Of a stretch of 64,000 nucleotides of DNA, positions 2,615 through 43,700 are shown in pieces. Position numbers and translations under genes: made by a program. Every line of letters starts with the position of its first letter. Within the stretch, counting starts at the first letter, position 1. Source of the DNA: Magallana gigas (taxonomy: Eukaryota); contig NC_088859.1 of assembly GCF_963853765.1 (NCBI RefSeq), positions 15,562,001-15,626,000 of the forward strand. The letters are read 5' to 3'. Under the pieces are notes generated by a model that searched no databases, was not told where the DNA came from, and saw only the letters and a program-made list of their open reading frames with translations.

Positions 2615-3453
2615 ATATAATAAGTATGTTGATATGCAAGATAATTATGTCAACATGCAACATAACTATGTTGAAATATTTGACAAATAAGAATTATAAA
2701 AAAAAAATTAAAAATCTCAAACATCGCCAACATGTGGCATCTAAGATGCTAGATGCTCTCTATTTATGTCGACATGCAACTTATTTATGTTAACATGCGA
2801 GATAAATATGTCGACATGTAACTTATTAATGTCAACATGCACGCTATCAATGTCAACATGCACCTTATTTATGTTCACATGCAATATATTTATGTCGACG
2901 TGCAACTTATTTATGTTAACATGCAATATATTTATGTCGACATGCAACTTATTTATGTTAACATGCAATATATTTATGTCGACATGCAACTTAGTTATGT
3001 TGACATGCAATTTATAAGTTGCATGTCAACATATTTATCTCGCATGTGAACTTAAGTTTCATGTCAACATATTCATATCGCATGTCAACATAACTAAGTT
3101 GCATGTCGACATAAATAAGTAGCATTCGAACATAACTTACTTGCATGTCGACATGAATTTAACTAAGTTTCATGTCAACATATTTATATCGCATGTCAAC
3201 ATAACTAAGTTGCATGTCGACATAAATAAGTAGCATTTGAACATAACTTGGTTGCATGTTGACATAAATAAGTTGCATGTCAGCATATTTATCTTGCATT
3301 TAACATGAATAAGTTGCATGTCTGCATAAATAAGTAGCATCTTGGATGTCACATGTGGGCGATAGTTTGGTAGTTTAGAGGTAGTTTTTTGAGATTTTTT
3401 ATAATTCTTATTTGATTGCAAAATAATTATCTTGCATGTCAACATATTTATAT

Positions 3454-4419: not shown

Positions 4420-7400
4420 TATCTTGCATGTCGACTGATTTGATAGAAAAAGAACACGTACACATGGGGCAGAGATTAGTCAAAATATAATATCATGCCG
4501 GTAACTTTTTTATTGCAGTTTTTGAAAATCGAATTATCATTTAATGTTGATGCAGTGTTTGCACTTTTAGGTATGTATTGTATCTAAAAGATGAAATAGT
4601 TTAAAATTGAAGACATGTTGTAGTTCCTACAAAATTATTCCTTTTTTACATTGATTACTAGTATAAGACCTTCCTCTCAAAATAATAGAAAACCCACCAG
4701 GGTTATAATATGAGTAATCAAAAGGACGAATGCCAAACCAAGTATCTGTAATAAGAAACCAGGATACGTGTTCTGTATTGTATGTGCATTTACTGGTTCA
4801 TTTCCTTATCAACAGGAGAGAAGTTACAATACGTGCACCGTGTTTCATTATGGATATAAACTTAAAGTTTTCAAATTTTCCGTATCAATGAACCTCTACA
4901 GTTGAAAAAATATCTTTATTTTGTCCTTTAATACAATATAACAAGACCTTCCCCTTTATTATTTGCAAAGTGTCTAGGCAATGATTTTTTTCCTTCAAAA
5001 CTTGTTACATGTATCATTTTTGGGAGTTGATTTTAATCAACTCTCCTATGCAGTTACTCTGGCAAACCGAAAGTGAAACAGTGTTTGGACCTAAGCACAA
5101 ATCAACACCGCTGACACGACTAAGTTCTTGAAAATAAAGAAAAAAATTCAAAGTAATGTAATAGTCAAATTTCATATACTACGAACAATTTAGATATTTT
5201 TGTTGTCTCATGTATTCCTACGCCAGAGTTAATATAGTCTCGTTCAGCCAGACGCTCGGCTGTCTCCGTAAATCTGCGACAAGCAGAGAGGGGGCTCTCT
5301 TGCTAGTCAGATATTAACGGAGACAGTCGAGCGTATAGTTAAACGAGACTAAAGTTCGATATCAATAGTGCTTGGATCCATACAATTTTTAGAAATATTT
5401 CGATAACTAATACATTCCAGTAGTTGAAATCTATCTTTAAATATTACACAACATGATTCATATGGGGTTTCTCGAAATTCTTGTCGGAAAAGTCTAAAAA
5501 TTCATATTATAAAAAAGTGCGTAATTCAAATTCGAACTAGAAACTAATTGCCATGCAAGATAAATTGATTTTAAAATAAATGATAATCGATAAAATCAAC
5601 TCCCGTCAGTACTTCAGTACTTTGATTGATAACATTGTACCGTACAAATGTATCTATCATGTGAGAAGAAAACTCAAGCGATAGTGTTCTATTCCCATTT
5701 TTATTGGTTAGAACTCGGTAACAGTTAAAAGATAAACTTCTGACTAAATTTCGTATAACTAATTCATCTGAATTTTCTTTATTGCGTAAAATCAAAATAC
5801 ATTTCACCAGCATTAAAGAAGCATTGGCATGGATTACACTTGTAGAAATCTAGATCCTTCTATCAAAAGGAATACATGCCAGGGATAAATTATAAGTTGT
5901 CCTCCATATTTGTTTTTATCTCAAGGTCTCTTTGAAAACGATAGAAAGGTTCATCTGCGTCACGCCTCCTGTCATCATCATCATCACCATCATCTCCATC
6001 AAATCTCCAAGACTCCAATTTCTAAATGACAAGCAAATACAAGAAAGTAACAAAATTGAGTAAAATTTTATGTTTTTGTATCCGGCATTTTGTTGTTGTC
6101 CGTTTCAATGCATCGGAAAACTAGCTACGTACTATCATTGATTTTGTTTTCTGGTCTATTTTCTTTCTCTTTTTTATTAATTTATTTTGTAAACACGTTC
6201 ATTCTTTAAATTAAACTTAAAGCAACGCGTCGATTTATATTTCACAACCAAGAAATCTTTACAGTACAACTAGTATGTAAAACATACCTTCAATCTCTGG
6301 TGTAATATTCTCAACACTGAAAAATGAAAAATTAATAATAAGAAGTTAATAATGTTACTATCTGTATAGTAAATGCGCATATATGTAATTTTGAAAAAGA
6401 AAGGTTAATATAGAAATTACAATTCCTACCTTTGACTAAGTGTACGAACTGAAAATCACATGATTTAGAACAACGTCCCGGAAATCCTGGTTCTCCAACA
6501 CGACCGGGGGTTCCCGGTGCTCCAGGGGGTCCTTCCCCACCCCTCTCCCCTCGTGGGCCACGCTGACCTTTCTCTCCTTTCTCGCCTGGAATACCCGGTT
6601 GACCTACACACTCTATTTTGGAAAAAGTTCAAAATATGAAATTAAAAACCTATATTTGTACAAATGATACTTTATTTATCTCTTATAAATAAACAATAGT
6701 TGGTATTAATCAACTTATCATTATTGAAATATACGGTGAAACTTTTGCAGTGACTGACACAGGCAAACAATGAATTTGTTTTGTAACTTAAGAATAAATG
6801 CTGGAGATATTTTGGTATGCTTAAAAACAGTTTAACTGAAGATTGTATTTTTAAAAATTTTCATTTTAAAACAATATTTTTGTAGCACCTTTTAGTAAAC
6901 TTTCTATCATGACGTTTAAGTATTTAGAAATTATTTGATGAAAATGATATCACTACTGTCTGCCTGCAAACAAAAAAAACTCAAGTTCATAACAAAAGTG
7001 ATATAGAAATTAACAAGACTGTCCATTAATCTAGCTAAATTGCATTTTTATTAATACGATTGAAATGATATTCATTCAACAATCATTCTATCATTGTGAT
7101 TAATAACTATGTATAACTACTGAATAACTATTTTACTAATTACAATTAAGCTTCAATGTACATAGCTTAACATTATAGGCATGTACGAGTATGATAAAAT
7201 CCTACCACACTCAGTGCACTCAATGGGACAAACTCCGTCTGAACCTGGTGTACCATCTTGTCCGGGTGACCCGGCCAGTCCTTGACTCCCTTGTTCCCCT
7301 TGACTCCCGGTATCCCCCTTTTCCCCCTTGTCCCCTTTATCTCCTTTCTCCCCGGGCTGACCAGGATTCCCTGTATCTCCTTTATGTCCCTTGTCTCCGG

Positions 7401-7644
7401 GTTCCCCCTTCTCTCCCCTATTTCCGGGTTGTCCTTTATCCCCCGGAACTCCTTCGGGACCTGGTTGTCCAGATAGTCCCTGTACACCTCTGTCTCCTTT
7501 CTCCCCGGGCCCTCCTTTATCCCCCGGTGTCCCCGGGGTACCTGGGGTCCCTGGAATTCCCGGTGACCCTTTTGGCCCATCCGCTCCTTTTTCTCCGGGT
7601 TCACCTTTGCATCCTATTTAATTATAAATATTACATATAATGTA
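4420..7644 (+). repeat. Segmental duplication, copy 1 (pairs with ~28560-31172)
   Basis: Introns and exons align colinearly with 28560-31172. Similarity stops at aatgtac (7644/31172). Copy 1 has ~620 extra bp (~5010-5630). Confidence 0.9.
5235..5351. mobile_element. Short palindromic (hairpin) MITE with TA at both ends
   Basis: tagtctcgtt...gacgctcggctgtctccgt / acggagacagtcgagcgt...aacgagacta form an imperfect ~117-bp foldback. Confidence 0.7.
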
Positions 7645-8104
7645 CTGAGAGTCTGTAATGTCCTGTGATAATACTAATTATAAAAGATTTCAGAAAAAAT
7701 TATTTTTATTGTTTCTGCTATATATATCTTCTTAATCATACGTCAGAATTTAATGTTGATATTTAGACGTGTACATTTCAAGGTTTGGATTTGAAGATTC
7801 TACAATCGTTTGAATAAACCATAAAATTTACCTTTGGGACAGTCTGTTGGCGGAGGTGGATCAAAAACTTGAAAAGATAAAAGCAAACTTTCATATCCAG
7901 GCAATATAATTACTTATTGATAAATCATCTCATCGAAAAAAAATATTTTGAACAAAATAGTAAATTCTTTAAGTTACTAATTAAAAAAAAAAGTTGAATG
8001 CGTAACAAATTTGTAATGACTCTCTCGCATTTCAAAATAAAATAAATATTTTTTGAAACATACGGTTAAGTCTGAATGTTGTTTACTTATTTTAAAAATC
8101 TATA

Positions 8105-8156
<52 letters not shown>

Positions 8157-8237
8157 GAACTTAAAAGCATACGTACAACTAAACCCTCTGACGATGACCG
8201 GAGTTAAAAGTAGCAGAATCCAGGTTAACGTTGTCAT
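5890..8237 (-). CDS. Short secreted collagen-like protein (copy A, 279 aa): signal peptide, Cys knots, 43+15 Gly-X-Y triplets, helical segment, Asp-rich tail
   Basis: Exons 8237-8177, 7867-7832, 7613-7206, 6603-6430, 6316-6288, 6021-5890; all GT-AG, phases consistent, 840 nt. Translation: [35 protein letters not shown]-(GXY)[10 protein letters not shown](GXY)[69 protein letters not shown]. Confidence 0.85.
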
Positions 8238-8709
8238 GATTGACGGAGACAGTGAGCAACTTCTACTCTGCATCAATTTTTATAACCACTGTAAGTATAA
8301 TCTATTTAAAAAATCTAATACTCATAAAAGTACTTTAAGTAGTTTACATTTTTTAGTACGGTAGTAGCCTATTACTGCTGATGTCAAGATATGGTCTATA
8401 AGATAAAAGAGCGATAAACATAAATGAGTTTAATTGATCTCTCATTAAATACATATTGATATCGAACATATACGGTTAAAAGTCATACCGGTACATCTTC
8501 ATACATGTATGTGCTTGAAATTTCGGGATGCATACCAAAACAACCCCCAAAAAATATATCAGATGAGTTTCAGTTAAACTCAAATACTTTGATTTTTTAC
8601 ATTAATATACATGTAGAAAAAGAGAGATATCGATCAGTGGGCAGCTTCAATTTTTCAGCTCTGACATAAGTCTTATAAATCGTTCAGTTAAACCAATTTG
8701 CATTTCAGT

Positions 8710-12393: not shown

Positions 12394-13964
12394 CTAAAGC
12401 CGATGAGTATCGTCTTTAGGGTATTTATCAAAGAAACTGCCATCAAGGGCCCCATGATACCCAAATATCTAGTCCAAGAAACCACCGGTATCTCCTTGAT
12501 GCTCGTTACCAGGAAAGAAACTTCCGAAATGAAGTGCACTTTCTAAATTCTGTAAAGAAAAAACCCGAATAACATCTGTTTAGTTATTGCTTAAAAAGAA
12601 AGATATTGTTATGAGTTACTGTTTTGTTTTATAATAGTTAATTATACCATTATATGCAATAAACGCAATTTTAAACTGTTAAAAAATGTGATGTTACATT
12701 AATTTCACATGTTATATTACAATACTTGTTTCTAATTTGAAAGCCATAAAACTTACCCGGACTCTTGATTCCAATTCAAAAAAGCCTTTTGAAAAGTAAT
12801 GATTATATTAATTAATAGTTGTAAAATTGAAGCTTTTCTAAAGAAAATTGATGTAGAAACTAATTTTAAACAAACAAAAGAAATTGTTTTGGGTTTTTTA
12901 TATTGCTAAAAGTCTTTGAAACTAAGGTGATCGATAAAATGTTTCGTTTTTAAGGCTGCATTGATATAAACAATTATTATAATGAATTAAACGTGCAACC
13001 TACCATGACTATCACAAGTTCCAACACAACTTCCGGGTTTTCCGGAGATCCCTCTTGGACCAGGGTGACCGTCTAATCCCGGATGTCCGGAATCTCCGGG
13101 AGATCCAGGATCGCCCTTTTGTCCCTTTGGTCCCCTGGATCCAGGATGCCCATCTTCTCCACTTTGACCTGGTATTCCCCTTTGGCCCTTGGTCCACTGG
13201 GTCCTGTTTCCCCCGCAACCCCTTGTGGACCACGTTCCCCCTTATGACCTTTGTCTCCTTTATCGCCTTTGTCTCCTTTCATCCCAGGCGCCCCATCTTG
13301 ACCAGGATGTCCTTTTTCCCCATGTCGCCCTTTTCCCCCTTTTCTCCTTGGGGACCCGGATCTCCTGGATGTCCTTTTTTCCCCTTTTCCCCTTGATCTC
13401 CCTTTTCACCTTTCGGACCTTGCTCACCGGGTAACCCTGTAGGCCCACGCCTTCCGGGAGGACCAATGCAAGTTTAAACAGCAAAATTTCAGACAATAAC
13501 ATTTAGTGAATAATTAACTTTTTGCACATGGATTTTAATTTTGTTTACATGTAGCAGCAGATGTTATACCTTTAGGACATCTTGAGAAGTCTCCAAAGCC
13601 GTGATCTGACGGAGGGGTAGGGGGAGACGGTGCTGTAAATATTTCAAAACGATCTAAGTTATACGAACAATAGAATTTTTTTTAACCAATTCGATAGTTA
13701 TACATTTACAACCTGTAAATTAAATGCAATGTACGAACATCAAGTAAAATACACATCATACATTTTTTTCTTCACAAACAGTTACTTAAAAGATGCCACT
13801 TCAGTTTTCAAACTTTAAAAATCTCATTTATTTTCATTTGTTTTGGAATTTTAAGTTGCTTTCTTATAAACAATAACCTTAATGTCATACTAACCAAAGC
13901 CAGAGAAACCTTGACTACCAACGACAACAGCCAAGAGAACGAGAACCAAAGGTAGGCGCTGCAT
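12394..13964 (-). pseudogene. Collagen paralog B, disabled
   Basis: Exons 13964-13895 (MQRLPLVLVLLAVVVGSQGFSGF), 13632-13570 (APSPPTPPSDHGFGDFSRCPK), ~13472-13004 (Gly-X-Y ending GSCVGTC), 12785-12757 (GFFELESRVR), 12549 onward (NLESALHF...). Defects: no AG at the expected collagen-exon acceptor (~13473), two 1-nt frameshifts (~13315, ~13190), and a TAG at 12471-12469 followed by 24 more open codons. Confidence 0.8.
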
Positions 13965-21690: not shown

Positions 21691-21850
21691 CGAGTCTGAG
21701 GGAGGTAAAGAGAGAGTATCAGTAGCAAGCTGCATGATGAATTTAATGGTACTAATTGTTTTCACAAAATTTGCGTATAAATAAGGTTAATCAGTCCAAA
21801 ACTAGCGCACGTTTTTTTGCACATTAAATGCACATTTTCAATAGGTGACA

Positions 21851-22264
21851 CTGTGGCTCCCAGGTCGTCCATCCGAAATTTTTCAGACCGGAAGCTACAG
21901 ATCTGCAGCTAGCATTTAAGTCTTTTTTACCCTTTCCGCCGCCCATAGTAGCGACATGCATAAAAAAAACATAACCTGTGTTAGGGTGCAATTTTTTAAT
22001 GCAGTGATCGCTATCTTCATAGTCTGCATAAATCATCAAAAATATCATTAAACAGTTCTTAATGGTTGATCTATAAAATGAGAAATCTTTAAAAGATAGC
22101 ATGATAATATCAAATTCGCAATTTATGACTTCAATTCAAGTAATTTATCGAGAAAATATAAAGAGACATTCGGTCCAACGATAGACATTTGATCATCTAC
22201 AGTCATGCTGAGGTTGACATGGACTCTGCTTTTCCTAGCGACGACAATTGCATATGGATTTGCT

Positions 22265-22307
<43 letters not shown>

Positions 22308-22580
22308 GTTGATCAATGGATATTATAAATAGTTTATAACATAGATTGTTTGAATATTATTGGGATTTGTCATAAAATAATGACGCTTTTGTCATTTCAG
22401 CTGGAGGAACGTTTTCGACGCCAGCGTCGCCGAGCTGTCCTCAGGGTAATGTTGTCTTCAAACATTATACGCAAAACATAGCATGCTTTTTTCATGTAAC
22501 GTTTTGATTTTGATATCTGCAATATGGCACATTAATCTTTATTATTTGATAGAGTTTTGATTTTTTTTAATCTTTTCAAT
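21851..22580 (+). repeat. Dispersed repeat, same family as 1-720
   Basis: Colinear with the window start, including the internal (GA)n. Confidence 0.85.
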
Positions 22581-22765
22581 TTGTTCATTATATGGTGTAA
22601 TCTTTGTCCTTAGTAGAAAAAATAACCATTTTTTCCATTCCGAATCTTGAAACAGTTTAAGTATGGCCTTACCAAAAACCTGAATTACATCTCTTTATAT
22701 AATTCTACTTGTATGAAATAAAAAAAATAATGGAGAAAGACAGCAAATGAATTCTTACTAATCAG

Positions 22766-25700
22766 GATGCAAGGGTAATCCTGGAAATCCAGGATTTCAC
22801 GGACCTCCGGGAAACCCCGGCCAACAGGGAGAGAAGGGGGACAAAGGTGATCCGGGGAACAAAGGACAAAAAGGAGACCGAGGAGATCCTGGTTCAAGAG
22901 GTGTTTCCGGAGAAAGGGGAGACCAAGGGGAAACTGGACCACGTGGGTTTCCAGGAGTTATGGGACCACCTGGTAACCCAGGACAACCCGGATCATGTTC
23001 CAGCAGGAGCGATAACTTACCATCTGGTATTCTTTAGTGTTTTTTGATTTAAATTTGTGTATATTTAATTCCGATTTATTAGTATTAAAGATATAGAATG
23101 CTAAAAACTATTTGATATAATTTTTTTTAAGACACTTTGTACAGTTTTGAGGCAACTAGTGCATATGATCAAAGGTCCCCTCCATTTTTCCATTTCTTAT
23201 ATTCAACTTTTTTTATTAAAAATTAAATGTGTCAAAACAAACATGAATTTATGTTATTTTTACAGTTCTAATCCGCAAGAGGTTATCACATATGTTAATT
23301 TTAAATCACATTTGAATGTACGTATGTTTTGTCAATTTGCAATAAATAAACCGTATAGTGATAATAGTATTTTCAAACTTTCCTTTCAGTATTGAAGAAT
23401 CTCTTCATTTTTCGAAAAATTCAGGTTTGTAAATATTTTATCAGTCTGTATTTTTCGGTTTCTCTCAAGGACTATATACGGTTTGAACCTAAAATGGCCC
23501 CTTATGTGAACATCGTCATTTTACTGTTATTCTTCGTTTCCTTAGTACAGATATGCATTTGACGTTTCTTCATAATTTTCATTTTGATTTAAGTGCCCAC
23601 AATTTAAAAAATATGACATCATAAAGTTTACCTTTTCCCGCCATTTTCGCAATTTTAGCATAAACCGGCTCGTTTTCAAGCAGTTTTTTTTAAGAAAACA
23701 TTGACCGATTGCTTGAACAACAAAAATATTTTCACTAAAGATGTATCTATCCAGTACTTATAAGTGATAAAAAGTTCGTTCTTGTTCAAAGCGTCGCTTT
23801 ATATTTCCCATTCGAAAAAAAGGAAAATGTCAAATTTTCACTGATTTTGTTTAAATTATAAAAATAGCGTCACTTTTGATGTCATATATTGTCAGTGAGT
23901 GCAAGTAATTCAAATAAATAGGCCAAAAATATATTTTATATCTATTCTTCTGAAAATAACACAACAATTTAATGTACATGAAACACTTCAAAAAATTACG
24001 ATTTATGGGGGCCCAATTTGATTAATATCATATATACGTTAGTTCTTTATTGCGCTGATTTGGATACATTTTATTTTAGTCATTAGAGTTAAAAGTTGAA
24101 AAACTGAAATGGTTACTACATGAAATAATTGGAAAAGGCAACAATGGCAATGGCAATGGTAATAATGGCAATGGTAACAACGGCAATGGCAATGGTAACA
24201 ATGGCAATGGTAACAACGGCAATGGCAATGGTAACAATGGCAATGGCAACAACGGCAATGGCAGTGGTAACAACGGTAATGGCAATGGTAATAATGGCAA
24301 TGGCAACAACGGCAATGGCAATGGTAACAACGGTAATGGCAATGGTAACAACGGCAATGGCAACAACGGCAATGGCAGTGGTAACAACGGTAATGGCAAT
24401 GGTAATAATGGCAATGGCAACAACGGCAATGGCAATGGTAACAACGGTAATGGCAATGGTAACAACGGCAATGGCAATGGTAACAACGGCAATGGCAACA
24501 ATGGCAATGGTAACAATGGCAATAGCAACAACGGCAATGGCAATGGTAACAATGGCAATGGTAACAACGGCAATGGCAATGGTAATGGCAATGGTAACAA
24601 TGGCAATGGCAACAACGGCAATGGCAATGGCAACAACGGCAATGGCAATGGTAACAATGGCAATGGCAATGGTAACAATGGCAATGGCAACAACGGCAAT
24701 GACAATGGCAACAACGGCAATGGCAATGGCAACAACGGCAATGGCAATGGTAACAATGGCAATGGTAACAATGGCAATGGCAACAACGGCAATGGCAATG
24801 GCAACAACGGCAATGGCAATGGTAACAACGGCAATGGCAATGGTAACAACGGCAATGGCAACAACGGCAACGGCAATGGCAATGGCGGCAATGGTAACAA
24901 TGGCAATGGCAACAACGGCAATGGCAATGGTAACAATGGCAATGGCAACAACGGCAATGGCAATGGTAACAATGGCAATGGTAACAATGGCAATGGTAAC
25001 AATGGCAATGGCAACAACGGGAATGGCAATGGTAATAACGGGAATGGCAACGGTAATGGCAATGGCAACAACGGGAATGGTAATAATGGCAATGGCAACA
25101 ATGGAAACAATGGAAATGGAAACAACGGTAATGGCAATGGAAACAACGGTAATGGCAATGGAAACAATGGTAATAACGGCAATGGTAACAATGGCAACGG
25201 CAACAATGGTAATAACGGCAATGGCAATGGTAACAATGGCAATGGCAACAACGGCAATGGCAATGGTAACAACGGTAATGGCAATGGTAACAACGGCAAT
25301 GGCAATGGTAACAACGGCAATGGCAACAACGGCAATGGCAATGGTAATAACGGTAATGGCAATGGTAATGGCAATGGTAACAATGGCAATGGCAACAATG
25401 GCAATGGTAACAACGGCAATGGCAATGGTAACAATGGCAATGGAAACAATGGTTATAACGGCAATGGTAACAATGGAAACAACGGTAACAACGGCAATGG
25501 CAATGGTAACAATGAAAATATTAACAACGGCAATGGCAATGGTAACAATGAAAATAGTAACAACGGCAATGGCAATGGTAACACCGGCAATGGTAACAAC
25601 GGCAATGGCAACAATGGTAACAATGAAAATAGTAACAACGGCAATGGCAATGGTAACACCGGCAATGGTAACAACGGCAATGGCAACAATGGTAACAATG

Positions 25701-25801
25701 AAAAAAGTAACAACGGCAATGGCAATGGTAACACCGGCAATGGTAACAACGGCAATGGCAATGGTAACAACGGCAATGGCAATGGTAACAATGGTAACTG
25801 A
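22766..25801 (+). CDS. Collagen paralog D (5' exons not found), predicted to end in a long Gly-Asn repeat tail
   Basis: Exon 22766-23026 reads GCK plus 24 perfect Gly-X-Y triplets plus GSCSSRSDNLPS (phase 1-1). Exon 23145-23174 reads VLRQLVHMIK (compare copy A QFVHLVK; weak donor gtcccc). Exon 23390-23424 reads VLKNLFIFRKIQ (phase 1-0). Exon 24080-25801 is phase 0. The join is open throughout, but the exon linkage is inferred. Confidence 0.6.
24080..25801 (+). CDS. Terminal exon, 573 codons plus stop: SLELKVEKLKWLLHEIIGK then ~555 aa of (GN/GNN)n
   Basis: Good acceptor ttttattttag|tca. The frame is open to TGA at 25799-25801, exactly where the repeat ends. AATAAA at 26091. It is missing from the ORF track because the frame has no start codon (TAG directly upstream). 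Confidence 0.75.
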   Translation, partial: SLELKVEKLKWLLHEIIGKGNNGNGNGNNGNGNNGNGNGNNGNGNNGNGNGNNGNGNNGNGSGNNGNGNGNNGNGNNGNGNGNNGNGNGNNGNGNNGNGSGNNGNGNGNNGNGNNGNGNGNNGNGNGNNGNGNGNNGNGNNGNGNNGNSNNGNGNGNNGNGNNGNGNGNGNGNNGNGNNGNGNGNNGNGNGNNGNGNGNNGNGNNGNDNGNNGNGNGNNGNGNGNNGNGNNGNGNNGNGNGNNGNGNGNNGNGNGNNGNGNNGNGNGNGGNGNNGNGNNGNGNGNNGNGNNGNGNGNNGNGNNGNGNNGNGNNGNGNGNNGNGNGNGNGNNGNGNNGNGNNGNNGNGNNGNGNGNNGNGNGNNGNNGNGNNGNGNNGNNGNGNGNNGNGNNGNGNGNNGNGNGNNGNGNGNNGNGNNGNGNGNNGNGNGNGNGNNGNGNNGNGNNGNGNGNNGNGNNGYNGNGNNGNNGNNGNGNGNNENINNGNGNGNNENSNNGNGNGNTGNGNNGNGNNGNNENSNNGNGNGNTGNGNNGNGNNGNNEKSNNGNGNGNTGNGNNGNGNGNNGNGNGNNGN

Positions 25802-26334
25802 CAAGGGAGCCGAAAACCTTATAAAAGAAAAACAATTCTATAGTTTTGTTTTAAATGACAGTTTATGTTAACTTTAACTAACTCTGCTTGCAAACTTCAT
25901 TTGTAATAATGCATTCAATGAAATTCAACGAAATTGTAAATTTTGTTATTATCATGTTTTATTCATTAAATAATTTTTATTTTATTCATTTGTGAAATAC
26001 TTAATGTTTTGAATTTTTACTTCCCATTCATGTAAAATTATATTTTTGTTTCATTTAAACTGTTTCACTAATTTGAGTCTATATTGGCACAATAAAAAGA
26101 AACTTAAGAATTTGAAAAATAGTATATTTGATTATTTTGTGAGATAGATGTGATTTACGGTTGTCACCAATATTCGTTGAACACATTCGTTAATTTCAAT
26201 GTTGAGTCGATGTACAAAATCAAATGTGCAGCGAAATATAATATTTACTGACGATTAATGACTCTTAATTAACATACCCTGAAAAATGTCAATTTTACTT
26301 AGACAACGAAAAATGAGATGTTCATCTGATAGCT

Positions 26335-27827: not shown

Positions 27828-28618
27828 TTATGGTGGCATATCTCTGCCCCTTGTATGCAAGTTATTTATCTATCGAATATGTCAACATGCAAAATAAGCA
27901 TTTGACATGCAAGATAATTATGTCAACATGCAACATAACTATGTTGACATGGAAGAAATTTGTAATCAAATAAGAATTATAAAATTTTTTTAAAAATCTC
28001 AAATATCGCCAACATGTGGCATCTAAGATGCAAGATGCTACCTATTTATGTTAACATGCGAGATTAATATGTTGAATGGTAACTTATTAATGTCAACATG
28101 CATCTTAGTTATGTTCACATGCTACACTTATTTATGTGGACATGCAACTTAATTATGTTCACATGCAAGATAAATATGTTGAATTGCAACTCGGTTATGT
28201 CAGCATGCAACTTATTTATGTTAACATGCAATATATTTATGTCGACATGCAACCTAGTTATGTTGACTTGCAATTTATAAGTTGAATGTCAGCCTATTCA
28301 TCTCGCATGTGAACTTAACTAACTAAAGTTGCATGTCAACATATTTATCTCGCATGTCAACATAACTTAGTTGCATGTTACCATGAATAAGTTGCATGTC
28401 GACATAAATAAGTAGCATCTTGGATGTCACATGTGGGCGATATTCGAGATATTTTGAGATTTTTTATAATTCTTATTTGATTGCAATTTTCTTGCATGTC
28501 AACGTAGTTATGTTGCATGTTGACATAATTATCTTGCATGTCAACATTTCTATCTTGCATGTCGACATATCAAATAAAAAATAACTTGTACACAAGGGCA
28601 GAGATATGCCACCATAAA
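27828..28618. mobile_element. Foldback-like MITE, uninterrupted copy
   Basis: TIRs tttatggtggcatatctctgccccttgt / acaagggcagagatatgccaccataaa, with internal inverted arrays of catgtcaac subrepeats. Confidence 0.85.
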
Positions 28619-31172
28619 TATAATATCCTGCCGGTAACTTCTTTATTGCAGTTTTTAAAAATCGAATTATCATTTAATGTTTATGCAGTGTGTGCACTTT
28701 TAAGGCATGTACTGTATTTAAAAGATGAAATAGTTTAAAATTGAAGACCTGTTGTAATTCCTACAAAGATTTTCTTTTTTTACATAGATTATTAGACTTT
28801 CCTTTCAAAGTAATGAAAAAACCAGGGTTATAATATGAGTTATCAAAAGGACGAATGCCAAACCAAATATTTGTAATAAGAAACCAGGATAAGTGTTTGG
28901 TATTGTATGTGCATTCACTGGCTCATGCCCTTATCGACATGAGAGAAGTTAGAATAAGTGCACCGTGTTTCATTATGGATATAAACTTAAAGCTTTCAAT
29001 TTTCCATATCAATGAACCTCTACAGTTGAAAAAATATCTTTATCGTGTCCTTTGATACAATATAACAAGTGTCCTTTGATACATATAACAAGGCCTTCAT
29101 CTTTATTTTTTGCAAAATGTCTAGGCATTAAATGAAGTTTTTTTTTCTTCAAAACTTGTTATCATGTTTGATAACAGTACCGTACATATGTATCTATCAT
29201 GTGAGAAGAAAACTCAAACGATAGTGTTCTATTCCCATTTTAATTAGTAATTTTAATTAGAACTTGGAAACAGTTAAAAGTTAAACTTCTGACTAAATTT
29301 CGTATAACTAATTCATCTGAATTTTCTTTATTGCGTCAAATCAAAATACATTTCACCAGCATTAAAGAAGTATTGGCAAGGATTACACTTGTAGAAATCT
29401 AGATCCTTCTATCAAAAGGAATGCATGCCAAGGATAAATTATACATTTTCCTCCATATTTGTTTTTATCTCAGAGTCTCTCTGAAACCGATAGAACATCA
29501 TCATCATCATCATCTCCATCAAATCTCCAAGACTCCAATTTCTTAAATGATAATGCATATTCAAGAAAGTAACAAAAGTGAGTAAAATTTTATGTTTTTG
29601 TATCCGACATTTTGTTGTTGTCCGTTCCAATGCATCGGCATTTAATTATTTGTTTTCTGATCTGTTTTTCTGTCTCTTTTTTATTTATTTTTTTAAATTT
29701 TGTAAACACGTTTATTCTTTAAATTAAACTTGAAGCAAGGCGTCCATTTATATTCCACAACCAAGAAATCTTTACAGTACAACTAGTATGTAAAACATAC
29801 CTTTAGTCTCTGGTGTAATATTCTCAACACTGAAAAATGAAAAAAATTAAGAAGTTGAATTTTAGCCTCCGCCCTAATTAATAATGTTACTATCTGTATA
29901 GTAAATGCGTAATTTTGAAAAAGAAAGGTTCATATAGATATTACAGTTCTTACCTTTGACTAAGCGTACTAACTGAAAATCACATGTTTTAGAACAACGC
30001 CCTGGAAACCCTGATTCTCCAACACGACCGGGGGTTCCCGGTGCTCCAGGGGGCCCTTCCCCACCCCTCTCCCCTCGTGGACCTCGCCGACCGTTCTCTC
30101 CTTTCTCGCCTGGAATACCCGGTTGACCTACACACTCTGTTAATTTGGAAAAAGTTCAAAATATGAAATTAAATACAATTATTTGTACAATTAATACTTT
30201 TATTATCTCTTATAAATAAACAACCGTTAGTATTAATCAACTTACTATTTTTCAAATATACGATGAAACTTTTGCAGTGACTGACACGGGCAAACAATGA
30301 ATTTGTTTTGAAACATAAGAATAAATGATGGAGATATTTTGGTAGGCTTCAAAAAAACAGTTTCATTAAAGGTTGGATGTTTTTTAAATTTCATTTTAAA
30401 CGGCATTTTTGTGGCACCTTTTAGTAAACTTTCTATCACGACGTTTAAGTATTTTCAACTAGAAATTATTTGATGAAAATGATATCACTACTGTCTGCCT
30501 GCGATCAAAAAAACTCAAGTTCATAACAAAAGTGATTTAGAATTTTTAAATAAGACTGTCCATAAATATAGCTAAATTGCATTTTTATTAATAAGATTGA
30601 AATGAAATTTATTCAACAATCATTCTGTCAATGTGATTTATATCTGTTTATAACTACTGAATAACTATTTTACTAATTACAATTGAGCTTCCATGTACAT
30701 AGCTTTACATTATAGGCATGTACGAGTATGATAAAATCCTACCACACTCAGTGCACTCAATGGGACAAACTCCGTCTGAACCTGGCGTACCATCTTGTCC
30801 GGGTGACCCGGCCAGTCCTTGACTCCCTTGTTCCCCTTGACTCCCGGTATCCCCCTTTTCCCCCTTGTCCCCTTTATCTCCTTTCCCCCCGGGCTGACCA
30901 GGATTCCCTGTATCTCCTTTCTGTCCCTTGTCTCCGAGTTCCCCCTTCTCTCCCATACTTCTGGGTTGTCCTTTATCCCCCGGAACTCCTCTCGGACCTG
31001 GTTGTCCTGGTGGTCCCCGTACACCTCTGTCTCCCTTCTCCCCGGGCCCTCCTTTATCCCCAGGTGTCCCCGGGGTATCGGGGGTCCCCGGAATTCCCAG
31101 TGACCCTTTTGGCCCATCCGCTCCTTTTTCTCCGGGTTCACCTTTGCATCCTATTTAATTATAAATATTATA
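28560..31172 (+). repeat. Segmental duplication, copy 2 (pairs with 4420-7644)
   Basis: Colinear with copy 1, apart from the ~620 bp it lacks. Confidence 0.9.
29470..31150 (-). pseudogene. Collagen copy C: 5'-truncated duplicate of copy A
   Basis: Exons 31150-30743, 30127-29954, 29829-29801, 29541-29470 match A exons 3-6 in size, except the last. No signal or CPK exon (duplication ends at 31172). Two Gly substitutions (GTP-DTP, GQP-RSM). A 29-nt deletion in the GAT run frameshifts the tail to ...FDGDDDDDDVLSVSERL*. Confidence 0.8.
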
Positions 31173-34788: not shown

Positions 34789-37700
34789 CTACTCAATGAT
34801 AATGACTTCACTATCGGAGGAATCAGTATTTCCCTCATCTTCGCTCTCACTGCTGGATGTGTCCTGGTTTTCTCTAATTGGCAAGAGGATCTTCTCTGGA
34901 AGATCGGTGACTTCTTTTTCCTCCTTCTTCGCCTCTTCTTCCTTTGGTGGGGGAACGTTGACATACTTGTGGGTGGTCAGAAAAGAACCGTATGTGCTTC
35001 CCTCCTGTGAGGTCACCTCATCTTTGGTGCTGGTGGGTGATGGTTCTGGGACTTCCTCAGAGTCCGTCCCATGCTCTGGGATGGACAGGGACAATTTTTG
35101 GTCCGACCGCTTTAAACTGTCAACGCGGAACATCTTGTGTTCCTGTCCTGCTCTCTGAATGGCAATGGTGGCCTCCATGTCAATCATTGCATACTCGATG
35201 GATGTTGATTTCTGCATTTTTAGGGACTTTTGAGAAGCTTTACGACTCTTACGAATTGGTTTCTCACGGAGATCAATCTCGGCATAATTCAACTGACGCT
35301 CCGGTTGTTCTCCCGTAAGTGACATTGACTGTGAAAATGGCGGAGATGAGGGTGGACTTGTTTCAAAGTTCATGTATGATATTTTGTTAGAAAAGGTTCT
35401 CTCCGAAAACTTTGAGTACAAACTTTCTGAACGAGAGAATTTCGGCAGGTTTGGAGAATCTCGGTCTTTGCTGAAAGCGCTGAACTGGGACACTTGATCA
35501 AACGTAAATACACTGGAATTCATGGAGGGGGAGCGAGGGGTTTGGGAGGGACTGGAGCTGAGACTCTCGTTCAATGGCCGCTTCCTCTCCAGTACAATGT
35601 AGCAGTTTCCAGCCCTGGGCCTCATGACGGTGTAAGCTGGGCTGTTCCTCAGGGCGTTCTCACTACAGATACTGTCGGTGTAAGAAGACAGGGAAATTTC
35701 ATCATCAGACGAGTGGTCCTGGTCCAACTCCACCACCACAGCTGTGGACCGGGAATCCTGATCATCCACTGTACTGCTCACAGATGCTGGGGATCCTTCT
35801 TTTACAGCTGCTGCAAATATTTAAATTAACATAATTTTAAAATATTCCAAGAAGTCACAAGTATTTACTTATACACATTTACATTTTTTTGAGCCAAACA
35901 TGTTGATATCTGTTGTAATATTGCTGCAAGAACTTTACGTAATTAAGGGGACTAATTGGTCAACAAATTAATCATCAGATATACCTTAAAATTATAAATA
36001 TGATATTTTAGATCATAAACTATCATTTACCAGAGTCAAAATCTTAATATTTCAGCTCTTTTTAAAAATTAGTTCCCTATATGTATCTTTAAACAGAACT
36101 CTTTGTTTCAAGGAGATTAATTAAGTCTAAATAAGGCCATGGCCAAGGAACAATGTTAAGCATAAAAATTTAAGCTTCATTCAAACTTTTACCTTGTCTG
36201 GGTACCCATATTGATTCCTCTGGCTCCTCTGCAACTTTCAAAGTTTTAGACATCGAATCATCTGTATCTGTTGGTCCTATCAGAGCATAACTGTGCTCTG
36301 ATCTGAATGACGAGATGCTTTTATTATCCAGTGTGTTGTTATCTTTCCACAGTTCCTCTTTTCCATTGGAGGGAGCGTTCTCCAAAACAGGGGACAAAGC
36401 ACTACTTTGGTAGTTCTTTTGCTTTGGAGGTACAAATGGAGCCAAAGAAGCTACATATTTAGCAATAGCTGCAGCTTCTTCGTAAGGCGAAAATGCTTTC
36501 TTAGGGCACATGTTCAGCTTGAAATCGTCAGATTTCAATGAGTTTGTTTTCTCAGAATCTGTATCACCATAATAGTCCTTTACTTTAGAATATTTCATCA
36601 GATCAATCAGCTTTTCATCATCAGTTTTGCTCGAGGTCTGGCACAGTGGCATTTTGTATGATGGTTCATCCACTCTCAAAACAGTAAATATTCCCATTTC
36701 CTGGGTCTTCCGAAACTTCTGGAAGGATTTGGGTGACATGCATTTTCCCTCTGCATTACTTTTGGATGCTGAATCTTCCGAATCTGTTTGTCCATCACAA
36801 GGTCCTGTGTAGCCAGTCCTGCTTGTAGAATTGGATTCAGTACTTCCCGTGTCATTGGACTGTGTCATTTGGTCTGGTCCTATTAAATGCCTGTGGTCAT
36901 CAGTGGTCCCATTGGAGCAAAATGAATCTTGAGAAGTTTGATGAAAATTGTCTTTGGGAGCAGCGGCAGCAGCAGTAGAATTCATCTCCAGAAAGCTACT
37001 TCTGTTTGGAAAGCTAGAGGATCTTCTTCTTTCCACAACTTCAGACTGGTTCTGTTCAATACTGCTGTTGGCAGCAGACGACACACTTGATGTTGAGAGA
37101 TCCTTGACACTTGCATTTTCCTTACACACATGAATGTTTGATAAGGTTTTTTCTAAACAACTCTCACTAGAACTAGAGTTAAGAAGATTTTCTTGACTCT
37201 GAGACATGCTTTTCCTGTTACCCGAATTCCTTCGGATCAGTCTGGTAAGAAATCCTGGACTTTTACCAGGGTTTTCTGTACTTTTGTCATTTGGTGCAGA
37301 TTGCACTGAGGTTGTACTGGCACTTTTATGAACTTCCTGAGAAGAATCTTTGAGAATATTATGTTTCTGGAAATTTATCAAGTTTGGGAAAGGCAAAGAG
37401 GATTTTCCTTTTAACACCTCTTTGGCTTTTTCTGGTGACATGTTTTTGTTTGAGGAATTGTCTTCAGAGTTACGTCTTTCAATCTTTGGCGAGGCTGCTC
37501 CATTATCATCTCCGACAATTACAGAGTCTCTCACTGTTTGAGCGTTATGAACATAACTTTTTAGGGACTTTATATTTTCAAGGACTGATTTCTTCTGACT
37601 AGTTAAATGATGCATGAGCAGATAGTTTTCTTCCCTTACAGGGGTACTAGCAGCACTGCTGGGTGTGTCACTTAAACTGAGAGAATGATGAAACACCGGG

Positions 37701-40700
37701 CGAGAGAAACGACTCTCTGCAACTGAGGAAGCACTGCTTGATCGGGTGTACATCTTCTGAGGAGAATCTGAAGATTCCACTTCATCCCTGGATTTCAGTG
37801 TTACCCGTTCATCTTCAAACATCCCACTCATATCCATGTAACCGCACACATCATCGGGATTCAAATTTTCCTTTCCTGCAGAAGAAGGTGATCTCTTTGG
37901 AAGCCTCACTTTCAGTGGACCATCCTTATAATTGGACAGCTCAGAGGAACTTCCATGGGGAACACGTAGAGCCAATTCAGACCTTCTTCTGCTGCTTGGT
38001 GATGCATCCACTCCTGCCATAAGAAGATAATTTGGCTCCCGAATCGGACTCATCACTGGATTTACACCTTGCCTAGGACTTGAATATTGAGAGGAATACT
38101 TATTTCTTTTAGACAGATGGGCTCTGTGCTTTCCGGGAGGGATGGGAGGGGGACAGAACGGTCTACTCTTCCTCAGGAGTGCTGGTCCCTTTGGAGGTAA
38201 AGCAGGTGGTTGGGCGGCAGCTTCTTTGGCGGCAAAATCATTTGCGTATATACATTCAGTGTTTGCATAGTTTGACTCAGGAAGATCAATCGGAATTTTG
38301 TGAGATTCACCATCAACCCCTCTAACACAGCGATCTCTTGGAGATTTGGATTCCCTGTCATAACTCTCGCTTCTGTGAGACAGGATGCTACAGGTATCGT
38401 CGTCCGACTGGTTCCGTACGTACACATGACATTTATCCACATCTCTCCCTCCATCGTATTTCTCTAAATTGACATACGGCAATGGAGCAGACATTTTGGA
38501 AAAAGACGGAATTTTGCGTAGCCGCGACACCAAGTTGGGACTCAAAAGGACACTGTCGGAAAAGCCCGAAATACTACTCTGTGAACTAATGGTGGAATAT
38601 CGGTCGAGTCTGGGACTTAATGTGGCACGACGATGGTTCTTTGATTTTTTCCTTGGTAATGGTGGTGGTTTTTCTGCAAGATGGTCAGTTGTTTTCACTT
38701 TAGGTTTCTCCTTCACACCCTAAAAAAGTATCATAGTTTATTACATTCAGTTTTGAAGATTCATGTTCAATACCAAATATGGTATATTTGAATTTATAAT
38801 AAAACATACCTCATTGTAATTTTACTAAATTCAAATTTTTTTTGAAAAGTTTTTCTACTTTATAAATACTTGTATGTTTAATCGCATACACATATATTAC
38901 CATCATGATTTCTTCCAAAAGAGTTATTTCCCTTTGCAGTACTTCTTCTGATTTTTGAAGATTTTCCAGCTCGAGTCTCCGGCATTGTTCAGTCTCCTCT
39001 TCAATTCTGGAGGGTACTGATGCCACAGAAATGGATTTGCTGCCCTCCGATTGATTGCCATAGAACCCGTAGCCACATAGAGAGGGAGCACTGGCCGACA
39101 CCTTCACCATCTGCCCTAGGGCAGATACAGAGTTCTCTCCCGAGGAAATACTCATCTGAGAGTCGGAACTCGGTCCACTGGCAGAGCTCAGGCAGGCTTC
39201 AGACTCGATCCACTGCTCGATTCTGTTGTCTACACATTCTTTGCTGAGTTTATGAGACAAAATATCCGAGACATTTTTGAGTTCCTGAGAATTTTGAGAT
39301 ACACAATGGGTTGGTTGTTGAAATTGTTTAGTATTCAGATATAAATTAGAATTGTCCACTTTCCTTATTCGACTAGGGGGAACGTCGTATAACAAGTATT
39401 TTCTTCTCCCAGTCTCAAATTCATTTTTGTTTCGCAGATGTTTTTCGTTGTAAGCAGATGCATGGGAAAAGTCAGTGAAACTCAACGAGTGCCGTTTTGA
39501 TCGCTTGTCGTCAAAGAAGTTTTGGTCTGTGCAGTTTGACCAGTTCGGGAAATCTCTATACTGACTGTTATCGTTGAAGGAACTGTTGAGTGGCTCCAAA
39601 TGGTAGTCAAATAGCTGTGATCCTGTAACACATTTAAATCAGACTCATGAGGGGCTCTCTCAATATATCAGTTAGTTTAAAACGATGAAAGATGATCAAT
39701 TTAATTTAAAATCATACTCCACTTGAAAAAAAAATAAATTTGTTCATTGTCTATAAAATATAGCATATATTTGAAATTCTTTTCAAATTAACATGCTTAA
39801 TTTAAACAATTCCTCCAAATGGAAAGGCTACACTTTTGCTGTCTAAAGCATATCATTTAACAAATGCATAAATAAAACTAATTCTTTACTTTAAAAGCTG
39901 ATAAATAAAAATGAATTGATCAATAGCAAAGTTAGATTAATTGACTTACTTCGTTTGATAGACTTTCTACAGCTGGCTGTTTTCCCTTGACTGGCCAAGC
40001 TAACGATTTCATTGATCAACTCTGCTTGTTCCGACGTAAAAGCATGGACTCCAGCACCTACAAAAACACAACACTGGCCATGTTACTGTTATCAATTATG
40101 CATGTTTATTCATGGTTTTTTTTTTATGAAATAAAAAATAAGTTATTTTTTTTAGTGTAATGCAATGCAAGATGCATGTGTATCTCCTTGCAAATATATG
40201 TTAACATGCTGCCTGCAAATGCATGACTTAGAATTAAAATTCAACTATCAATTGAGTATGTATTAGAGGATGATAATTAATTTTTATTTTTGGAAATTTT
40301 AAAATTGACATCCCTCCTAAAAAAAGGAGAATATGAAATTAAATAATTTACAATTTATTCAAAGCATATTTCGAGAGAGAGAAAAAAATATGAGAGAGAG
40401 AGAGAGAGAGAGAGAGCCTGTTTTAAGTACGGTAGAAAACACATCTGAGGAGAGATTGGTCTAAAAAAAAAAGATTTTGCACTTGACTTACCTTTCCCAC
40501 AATTTGATCCACCTTCGAATATGAATTTTTTGTCCACCACACCAAATTTCCGCAAGTCTGAAATCTGCCAGATGGCTAAGACTTTGGGAGGAGCACCGTT
40601 TGTCAAGCAGAACTTCTGCCGGTGGATGTGCATCCGCAGAACGTCCAAGGGCAGCTTACTGTTGTTAGGAACATTGGTCACTTGCACTTTGAACTGGTCC

Positions 40701-43700
40701 TCTGCAACAAATGAAAACGAAATATATGTACTGTGCATGAAAAATTTTCTTTCTAAAATTAACACTGCATATCCACTGTATAGACTGTAAGGCTCCATTA
40801 AATACTCACATAGATCTAGAATCTGAGAGAAAAAGAGATTTCGGTGCTGATGAATGAACATGTTCATCACAGAAACTCCGAAAACATTTCTCTCTTATAA
40901 TAGGATCTTTGTAGAATTTATAGAATTAATGAAGACAGCTGCTTCTTTTTACACACAGCGGACTTTATGTGCAAACATGATGCACTGGATAGTATACAGA
41001 AGTTGACGGCCGATAAAAACTATCTGAACCTTTTTATATCAAAGTAACGAAGGATGTTTCCAATTCATGAAATCAAATTTAGCCGTGTACTTTTTGAAGT
41101 AACAAAATGTCATACTTTCTTCAAGAAGGAAATGCACTTAATTCTATTGCTAAATATCAGTCCTCGTATGTTATTTCTAATCTTTCACACGCATGAAACA
41201 TCCTGTTTTTTTTTTTTATTATTATGAATGAATCCTAAGCTCTGCTTGCTTTTAAGATATTTTTCTTCCCAGAGTCAATTTGCCCCTATTGAAGAAAAGT
41301 ACACAAAGCAATCAGCAGAATTAAGGCCATCTTGTATTGTGTTAACTGTCACTTCCTGACTAGAACTTCCTGTCTCAGTGATGACATTCCTGTTAATCTC
41401 TCAACAATTATCCATCTATACAGCTTATCAATTGACATCTTGATTTTATTTTTCTTTGTCACATTATCACTTGATGTCACAAACAAACATTTATAAAATT
41501 TCTAATTGCTTAACTTTTATATATATCTTTTATCCAATTCGTTCACATCCTTTTAAATATTTTTAACATAATACGCACATTTGGAGAAAAAAAACATTAT
41601 TACCAAATAGGGTAATTTAAATACTTCTTTAACAGAATGAGGTTTTTTTTCAACTTTTGGTACCTTCCCCAAGGCTTCTTCTGATTTTGATCTCAAACTG
41701 TATAAGGTTGTCCCTGTTTTCAAAGGAAAAGAGCGTGACTTGTTTCTGGCAGACAATGGCTAAGACATTGGTCTCCTTGTCATAGCTGAAGCCTGTCTCC
41801 AGACCGAAGAATCCCTCAATATTAAAGTTTGCCTTTGGTTGCCGTTTGTGAACATCTTTAACGTCCACCTTATATAGTTGTACGTTGAGTTGATCTGAAA
41901 AAAAAAAATTAAAAAATAAAATTCGGATCACCAAAACAGGTTAATTACTTTTCTGTGTGTGTGTGTGTTAAGTCACGTCTTTTGCGTTGTAAAAACATTG
42001 TTTCTTTTGTGTTTAGGTGTCTATAAAATCTATTTATGTTGTGTTTAGAGCAAAACTTTAAAATGTTTTTACACAGAAAACCAAACTGATGGTGTTAATG
42101 TGGGAGAGACAAACATATAATCATGAATCAATTAATGTCACACCGAGCCATTTTGGTTTCTTTGTTCATGACTCAAGTCACAATGATGCAATATCTTTCA
42201 TGCAATCAATACCGTAACACATTTTTTTTTAATATTTCGATAATTCATAAATGCAGTGTTGAAATCCCAGCCCTTCCCATTACACTCATAAAGGAGTAAA
42301 CTCAACTGAAGCAAACACGAATCTAAGATAAATGAATCAGCAATATACTCTCCAACTGATCAAATAACTAATGTACATTACTTACTGATAGATTAATACT
42401 TGTCATTGTGTTTACATATTTGATAAAATTTTGTCAGAAAAAAGAAAACCTAATATTTAAAGAGAAAAAAATTCTTATTTAATAAATAATTCATTTGGGA
42501 CATTGATGTACTTTAAGATACTGGTTTACAAGTAAGCTAGCTGCTTCAGCAAAATTAACAACTGGGATGCCTAGTACAGTCTCTTGCAAAAACAATTAGA
42601 TAATTGGTGTTTTCCCATAATCATTTAGCAAAAGATAAACCTTCTCAACATAGGCTATTAGCATGCTTGACCTCCTGTATGTTCTGTTAGGCATTGGACA
42701 TCAAAAGCAGATGTCTTGAAAAGACGTCTGAAAATCTAACTACTGGCATATCAATTAGCTGGGGCTTAAAAGGCTCGGATTATCTTCATTTTGTACCAAA
42801 GTAAATACTGTTTAATGTGACTCATAAGCTTTTTTAAATGAAGATAGATAAAAAATAAATCAAGAAAACGCTAATCTGATTCCGAAAAATCATGACCCAC
42901 TTAAACCAACCGGGTTAGAAAATCTGCCTTCAAACGAAAGAAGATGCTCTCTAAAATTTTACAGATCAGGGAACATCTGGAGAAGTGCAAAAAGTATCCC
43001 ATAACTCTTCTGTGTGGTTTAATTGGCCTAAAACTCGGCAGACTGGAGTATCCAGGCTGATGGTTTAGAAACAGTTGTCTTGCACAGCAAGCCATCCTTG
43101 TGTGAATATTCTCTCTGGTTTTTAAGTCTCTCTCTCAACACACCGATACTGTACCAGCTCCTGTCTTTGTTGTTAGCGTAAACATCTCCAATGAAGAAGT
43201 TTTTAAGGGTTTAACAGTTCAGTCTAGCTGCTCGGATTCTTTTGAAGGGCTTTGTGATAAATCACTAACTTTATTGTCAAGACTTCATTGTATACAAACA
43301 TGGGTACAGTCTTGAAACTCCACCTCAAATGATGACATCATGTTAACGCATTTACTTTAACAGCAATAAAATGTTGTTTTATGACTAACTGTGCAATATG
43401 ACCAGTTGAGATGCAAAAAGCAAAAAGAACAATTTATTTAGATTTCCACCTCAATAGCATTCACACAGACTAAATGCTTACATCTCATTCCCAAGGTGTA
43501 AAATTTCAATGGGCTATATAGATTTTAATCATTTATTCTTTCTTTCTTTCTTTAAATTCCTCAGCGTTTTCACTTAAAACGAGCCACAGCTTATATGGCG
43601 CAGTGCCAACAAAATGCATGTTTATGGATTTTAATATGTGCGATGTATTGTTCAATAACATATTAATTTGAAGCGAGCAAGTACAAATCGAGGGAGTTAC

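Follow-up and report, generated by a model that had tools for sequence, protein, structure and literature searches.

We describe here a gene of the oyster Magallana gigas that joins a collagen helix to a long tail of almost pure glycine and asparagine (Gly-Asn). It lies in a window of 64,000 nt (assembly GCF_963853765.1, contig NC_088859.1, positions 15,562,001 to 15,626,000 of the forward strand), and all positions below are counted from the first letter of this window. The locus is very probably a complete, expressed five-exon gene, whose coding sequence runs on the plus strand from 22205 to 25801 and joins 22205-22265, 22401-22445, 22766-23026, 23390-23424 and 24080-25801 into 2124 nt, translated into 707 aa with a single terminal stop. 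The encoded chain consists of a signal peptide, a short linker, a collagen helix, a heptad neck and the Gly-Asn tail; the mature chain would have ~689 aa and 64 kDa, with a basic head of 135 aa in front of the tail. Spliced RNA from three studies connects the collagen exon with the Gly-Asn exon, and the codon variation within the tail argues for selection on the protein it would encode.

Exon structure and spliced RNA

The initial annotation of this region, made from the letters alone, had proposed that a collagen exon is joined through two small exons to a Gly-Asn exon that starts at the acceptor 24080. All four of these exons have AG/GT borders and can be joined in frame. We compared four RNA runs with 21700-24145, a span that ends just inside the Gly-Asn array, and the contigs of three of them (X15, X25 and X29, each from a different study) carried the joints 23026>23390 and 23424>24080, both with GT..AG borders on the plus strand and with the same depth on either side (5, 39 and 5, respectively). 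One and the same contig included both the collagen exon and the 23424>24080 joint in all three runs, showing that the collagen and Gly-Asn exons belong to one plus-strand mRNA in the Gly-Asn frame, as had been proposed. The path between them was predicted correctly only in part. The junction 23424>24080 and the exon 23390-23424 are used, whereas the exon 23145-23174 was skipped in all three contigs, which show 23026>23390 in place of the expected junctions 23026>23145 and 23174>23390. In contig coordinates, exactly 35 letters separate the collagen exon from 24080, which corresponds to the exon 23390-23424 alone, and the sole RNA cover of 23145-23174 was one unspliced contig of 171 nt at a depth of 3.4. 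Because the skipped exon is 30 nt long, its omission leaves the frame intact.

The 5' exons, which the initial annotation had not found, were supplied by the X29 contig (492 nt) and by alignment with a paralog in the same window (copy A, described below). The contig contains the joint 22445>22766 with GT..AG borders and, further upstream, 22219-22257 followed by eight further letters and then 22401, which fits an exon ending at 22265. In the alignment, this first exon proved homologous to the copy A signal exon. Its signal peptide, MLRLTWTLLFLATTIAYG/FA, has the n-h-c layout and an A-x-G cleavage motif as judged by inspection. An in-frame TGA is located at 22190-22192, five codons before the ATG.

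RNA contigs with depths in the hundreds were also observed at 21700-21945, upstream of the gene, and at 23586-23667 and 23750-23831, within intron 4, with 95-99% identity and loose ends on both sides. These stretches behave as abundant interspersed-repeat fragments and not as exons of the gene.

Collagen helix, neck and codon variation in the Gly-Asn tail

The collagen exon (22766-23026), which had been noted as intact, encodes 26 uninterrupted Gly-X-Y triplets with Pro at 13 of the 52 X/Y positions, and matches Pfam Collagen (PF01391) with an E-value of 5.9e-19 and 68 bits against a cut-off of 27.2. Cysteines are present on both flanks of the helix (CPQGCKG... and ...GSCSS). The neck that follows is composed of 31 residues, VLKNLFIFRKIQSLELKVEKLKWLLHEIIGK, with N, I, I, L, V, L, L and I at the a/d heptad positions in 3-4 spacing. 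When the neck was modelled together with 188 tail residues by AlphaFold2, the part encoded by exon 5 was predicted as a helix at residues 2-18 with a predicted local distance difference test score (pLDDT) of 71-89. A collagen helix of 26 triplets could not exist as a single chain. Trimer nucleation usually relies on a C-terminal heptad neck, as in collectins and scavenger receptors, and cysteines flanking a collagen helix usually lock the chains. The triplets, the flanking cysteines and the heptad neck thus point to trimer formation, and the product is likely to be a secreted trimer.

The tail is made of 554 residues, namely 316 Asn, 221 Gly and 17 others (97% Gly/Asn), arranged in 132 GN and 84 GNN units with 214 Asn-Gly dipeptides, a longest pure G/N run of 250 aa, a single Lys and no Arg. 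Its last ~80 codons form a higher-order repeat that includes E, S, T, K and I. Tandem Repeats Finder placed the array at 24140-25791, its period lengths being 15, 21 and 36 nt, and the TGA at 25799-25801 comes immediately after the final unit, so that the almost pure GN/GNN frame from 24080 to the end of the repeat, first pointed out in the initial annotation, stands as described. The tail is probably disordered; AlphaFold2, run on the single sequence, gave it no fold (pLDDT ~30), which is weak evidence for disorder.

An open frame over this repeat is in itself not evidence for a protein, because all six frames are open or nearly so; as the initial annotation had remarked, the list of open reading frames (ORFs) contains only wrong-frame readings of the repeat. 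ORFs of 457-580 aa are listed there in three other frames. The reading phase is instead fixed by the spliced RNA contigs, and within this phase the variation is strongly uneven: deviations from GGC/AAT were found 6, 10 and 229 times at codon positions 1, 2 and 3, respectively, over the 554 codons. A purine at the third position is silent in Gly codons and turns Asn into Lys. Such purines are present in 10 of the 221 Gly codons and in only 1 of the 317 codons of the Asn/Lys box (AAN, 316 Asn plus one Lys; Fisher p = 8e-4). This asymmetry is expected if a Gly/Asn polypeptide is under constraint, but not for a neutral DNA satellite, and the frame-specific variation thus argues for selection on the tail protein. 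The features of the gene are listed in Table 1.

Table 1 Features of the Gly-Asn collagen gene, in window coordinates
Feature	Position	Strand	Support and remarks
TATAAA box	22157-22162	+	~45 nt upstream of the start codon; putative promoter
Exon 1, ATG and signal peptide (MLRLTWTLLFLATTIAYG/FA)	22205-22265	+	Phase 1 end, GTACGG donor; X29 contig and alignment with copy A
Exon 2, Ser/Thr/Pro-rich linker with one Cys (SGGTFSTPASPSCPQ)	22401-22445	+	Joint 22445>22766, GT..AG, X29 contig
Exon 3, CK, 26 Gly-X-Y triplets and SCSSRSDNLPS	22766-23026	+	Phase 1-1; RNA contigs X15, X25 and X29
Relic or alternative exon (VLRQLVHMIK)	23145-23174	+	Weak GTCCCC donor; outside the observed mRNA
Exon 4, first part of the heptad neck (VLKNLFIFRKIQ)	23390-23424	+	Joints in X15, X25 and X29
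Exon 5 start, second part of the neck (SLELKVEKLKWLLHEIIGK)	24080-24136	+	AG acceptor after a pyrimidine-rich tract; RNA joint at 24080
Exon 5 remainder, 554-codon Gly-Asn tail and TGA	24137-25801	+	RNA contigs cover only the first ~50 nt of the repeat
Likely 3' untranslated region	25802-26096	+	Motif scan: ATTAAA at 25965 and AATAAA at 26091 (predicted)

The collagen cluster and the origin of the tail

The gene is located within a cluster of short Cys-knot collagens, every other member of which is on the minus strand. In copy A (~5890-8280, minus), the signal exon is followed by two collagen exons, by an exon for a helix of ten residues and by a terminal exon with an acidic tract. In copies A and B, as in the gene, the splice glycine is followed by CK at the start of the collagen exon, a short exon encodes a VLRxL helix, and the terminal exon has a KL..W motif with a low-complexity tract behind it; the signal exon is shared by copy A. 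The gene differs from copy A in having one collagen exon instead of two, in lying on the opposite strand, and in carrying 554 aa of Gly-Asn at the position where copy A has an acidic, Asp/Gly-rich tail of 43 aa. Homology between the two tails was considered and set aside as speculation only, the DNA alignment being too poor. The skipped exon 23145-23174 looks like a relic of the ten-residue helix exon of copy A, a likeness already seen in the initial annotation. A (GA)n microsatellite directly follows the signal-exon donor both in the gene (22260-22314) and in copy A (8110-8153), and is conserved across the duplication.

Other parts of the cluster show signs of decay. In copy B (29994-31151, minus), a near-duplicate of copy A, several triplet Gly codons are altered (e.g. 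GGT to GAT), and the alignment contained no homolog of the signal exon; this copy seems to be a duplicate in decay. At 13026-13464 (minus), a collagen exon is readable only with two frame switches, and the same sequence is found in one open frame of ~50 triplets in an upstream paralog of the cluster (L015:4102-4638); the copy at 13026-13464 is probably a pseudogene or contains an assembly indel. Next to copies A and B, at 2761-3340 and 27878-28569, a 21-nt unit (TATTTATGTCGACATGCAACT and its complement) is arrayed in both orientations; these arrays seem to have been duplicated along with the collagen genes. Further on, at 34789-40870 (minus), there are large Ser-rich open exons of 330, 848 and 262 aa and a further exon that matches the IRS-type PTB domain below threshold (Pfam PF02174, E 0.006). 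They probably represent an IRS/Dok-like adaptor gene that has nothing to do with the collagen cluster.

The neck-plus-repeat exon occurs in a single copy in the genome. A related locus was found on a genomic contig of 1458 nt from another run/species (L013), which is ~80% identical to the collagen and neck exons (compared with 22762-24125) and which continues after ...KLKWILRE without the Gly-Asn repeat. The downstream 520 nt of this contig match 27090-27743 in reverse orientation, 3 kb further on, and this stretch is single copy in the genome. The L013 copy also contains a frameshift and is without the exon-4 splice sites. Because the related locus is without the repeat and its downstream part matches in inverted orientation, the comparison of the two sequences indicates that the tail is lineage-specific and that its start coincides with a rearrangement breakpoint. 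Either state, with or without the repeat, may be the ancestral one.

Possible function and comparison with known systems

Relatives of the protein were looked for in 5.8 billion proteins by a word-indexed search, which covers proteins of 0.55-1.75x the query length, and in 1.84 billion cluster representatives by HMMER, run exhaustively; low-complexity filters limit both searches. In the former, the first 40 residues of exon 5 gave nothing at E <= 10, with Gly-Asn words swamping the candidate list, the whole of exon 5 gave unrelated Gly/Asn-rich proteins only, and the collagen exon gave only the fragment K1PSW8 and one 83-aa fragment from another species. HMMER returned 225 low-complexity matches, none of which begins at the neck or has a collagen helix, and the best of them was a papilin/ADAMTS-like protein with an interrupted NG linker; ESM Atlas gave no usable match. 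Among the 165 proteins retrieved overall, none has a collagen helix and the longest pure G/N run is 99 residues. Neither a collagen with a Gly-Asn tract nor a neck-plus-tail protein was found in these searches, in line with the initial annotation, whose author had known of no such fusion; because of the low-complexity filters and the length limits, this is to be read as "not found" rather than "absent". K1PSW8 itself is a UniProt entry of Magallana gigas (116 aa, "uncharacterized protein") whose residues are identical to two reading frames of the locus. It is assembled from the wrong-frame plus-strand ORFs 22350-22481 and 22847-23047, with an out-of-frame version of exon 2 connected through a frameshift to the collagen exon, of which the first 35 residues are included. 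The entry is an erroneous gene model that dates from the first oyster annotation and hides the real gene. The literature on GNGNGN-type motifs and on K1PSW8 turned up nothing relevant, and an "asparagine-rich protein" with mantle-biased expression in C. gigas (PMC13664851) could not be tied to the locus and was not used.

We consider it somewhat more probable than not that the product is a homotrimeric extracellular matrix protein displaying three disordered Gly-Asn chains. The neck of ~30 residues, which is C-terminal to the helix and thus stands where collagens normally carry the trimerisation nucleus, would set the register of the three chains; the collagen helix would then zip up and disulfides would lock the trimer. 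Such a trimer would be a rod of ~25 nm from which three flexible, neutral and very hydrophilic chains of 554 residues extend into the extracellular matrix, and in a shell-forming matrix these tails might modulate CaCO3 deposition or bind other matrix components. By analogy, a role in the shell matrix would be the single most likely one, although we propose it only tentatively. It is favoured because GN/GNN repeats are a recurring feature of nacrein, pearlin, N66, N14 and abalone shell proteins (PMC6003135), and because CaCO3 precipitation in vitro is inhibited by the NG-repeat domain of nacrein/N66, which may also bind calcium (PMC7747718; PMC6599672); the initial annotation had named the nacrein/N66 repeats, in agreement with these reports (PMC6003135, PMC7747718, PMC6599672). 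The domain is absent from C. gigas nacreins (PMC7747718), and its length varies within species (PMC7747718, PMC6599672, PMC6003135).

A bolder version, which we regard as a long shot, is that the NG-repeat activity is supplied in the oyster in trans, by the trimeric collagen scaffold. Asn-Gly is the fastest-deamidating dipeptide. The 214 NG sites of each chain might deamidate spontaneously to Asp/isoAsp-Gly after secretion, so that a polymer at first neutral and soluble would become a polyanionic, calcium-binding matrix on a built-in clock. Speculatively, such a deamidated tail would resemble the Asp/Gly tail encoded by the neighbouring paralog.

Few shell-protein motifs have had an effect on CaCO3 precipitation measured, and Gly-Asn repeat domains are one of them. 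The motif has so far been known on carbonic anhydrases and small acidic proteins, and here it is attached to a collagen/coiled-coil chain, in a tail far longer and purer than in any match of the two billion-scale protein searches. Gene catalogues miss the protein, holding only the frameshifted 116-aa fragment, and trypsin-based shell proteomics would be blind to a tail of 554 residues in which Lys occurs once and Arg never. Should the protein be released into shell, cement or mucus, it would qualify as a candidate component, structural or regulatory, that was out of reach of earlier inventories, and the proposed trimer, if true, would be a natural design for the multivalent display of a low-complexity polymer. 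If the tail is neutral, the locus would be a clean example of coding microsatellite expansion at the end of a gene in a birth-and-death cluster.

The neutral tail is the main deflationary rival. It supposes that the gene is transcribed, but that it is a young member of a birth-and-death cluster in which a coding microsatellite ran away, leaving a tail that has no selected role and may even destabilise the product. The decaying copies of the cluster (the frameshifted collagen at 13026-13464 and the Gly substitutions in copy B), the ancestral exon that is now skipped, the single-copy state of the neck-plus-repeat exon and the related locus of another species, which is without the repeat and looks broken, would all fit such a history, and units of 6 and 9 nt preserve the frame automatically. 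We nevertheless think it unlikely: the frame is intact over the 2124 nt from ATG to stop, correctly spliced RNA was present in three studies, and the codon pattern argues against neutrality, with 17 non-Gly/Asn codons in 554 compared with 229 third-position differences, and with purines that would create Lys nearly absent from Asn codons but present in Gly codons. Several points should be set against our interpretation of the locus as an expressed gene with a selected tail. The third-position variation was partly copied by unit amplification, and its counts overstate the number of independent events; the tail is probably young, because the related locus has the neck exon but no Gly-Asn repeat. 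The contig depth was only 5x in two of the three runs, and no raw reads from a poly-A run of this species (X23), of which ~1% was read, fell on the exons; therefore expression is not ubiquitous, or is low in that sample. The RNA evidence ends at 24145, and internal splicing may take place within the body of the repeat; the protein itself is predicted from the gene.

That the RNA evidence stops before the repeat body would also suit a Gly-Asn exon that is used mainly in another transcript, starting in intron 4 or running on the minus strand, the collagen-linked form being a minor by-product; the X15 contig, which keeps 90 nt of the intron upstream of the collagen exon, does reveal some heterogeneity. 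This is very improbable, however, given that the collagen exon and the 23424>24080 joint share a contig at equal depth in each of the three runs, that no other joint into 24080 was reported by the RNA contigs, and that all joints are GT..AG on the plus strand. Possible, if doubtful, is that the same protein works outside mineralisation, either as a polymer that hydrates, sticks or forms gels, with mucus, larval or adult cement, the ligament or the periostracum as its setting, or as an immune agglutinin-like tassel, in which a collectin-style collagen and neck would bear a low-complexity tail in place of the lectin head. The order of collagen, neck and C-terminal effector is that of the collectins, Gly/Asn-rich linkers or tails occur in prawn cuticle, papilin/ADAMTS-like and nematode ShK proteins, and no link of the gene to mantle tissue is at hand. 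On the other hand, Pfam detected no lectin, C1q or chitin-binding domain, and the documented molluscan setting of long GN/NG repeats is that of shell matrix proteins (PMC6003135, PMC7747718).

The trimeric matrix protein with displayed Gly-Asn chains that we favour can be compared with several known systems. Gly/Asn-rich tracts of non-mineral extracellular proteins were found in a prawn pro-resilin-like chitin-binding cuticle protein (P0001), a papilin/ADAMTS-like protein (P0025) and a nematode ShK protein. P0001 and P0025 are like the oyster protein in being secreted and in having NG-rich low-complexity tracts, but these tracts are broken by Y, S, K and R and are not accompanied by a collagen helix. 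In collectins the chain is ordered as collagen, neck and C-terminal effector, and the oyster gene resembles these and other coiled-coil-neck collagens in its signal peptide, Cys-containing N-terminus, collagen helix, short heptad neck and the position of its effector. The effector would here be a low-complexity tail, with the stop directly after the repeat and no Pfam match to a C-type lectin, C1q or chitin-binding domain, and the likeness is one of domain order and not of demonstrated sequence homology. Mussel byssal preCols, and in particular preCol-NG, as reportedly described by Qin and Waite in 1998, combine a collagen helix with glycine-rich low-complexity domains in which Asn is a partner residue, and thus follow a similar block-copolymer logic. 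In preCols the collagen core is several times as long and is flanked by domains at either end, the termini are rich in His/DOPA and there is no coiled-coil neck, whereas the oyster chain has 26 triplets, a single C-terminal tail, a non-repetitive N-terminal part of 35 aa and two His in the mature protein.

A close parallel for the tail itself is found in nacrein, N66 and pearlin, shell matrix proteins of pearl oysters, which are likewise secreted molluscan proteins with long tandem GN/GNN repeats; with 132 GN and 84 GNN units over 554 aa, the tail has the make-up of the NG (Gly-Xaa-Asn) repeat domain of nacrein/N66. In nacrein/N66, the repeat lies within or beside an alpha-carbonic anhydrase, and in pearlin/N16/N14 within a small acidic protein. 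In the oyster gene, by contrast, no Pfam family, including alpha-carbonic anhydrase, was found on exon 5, the other exons encode signal, linker, collagen and neck, and the repeat forms a C-terminal tail on a collagen and coiled coil, several times longer and nearly without acidic residues. The protein is thus made of known elements that are newly combined, a collagen-like scaffold and the molluscan NG-repeat domain.

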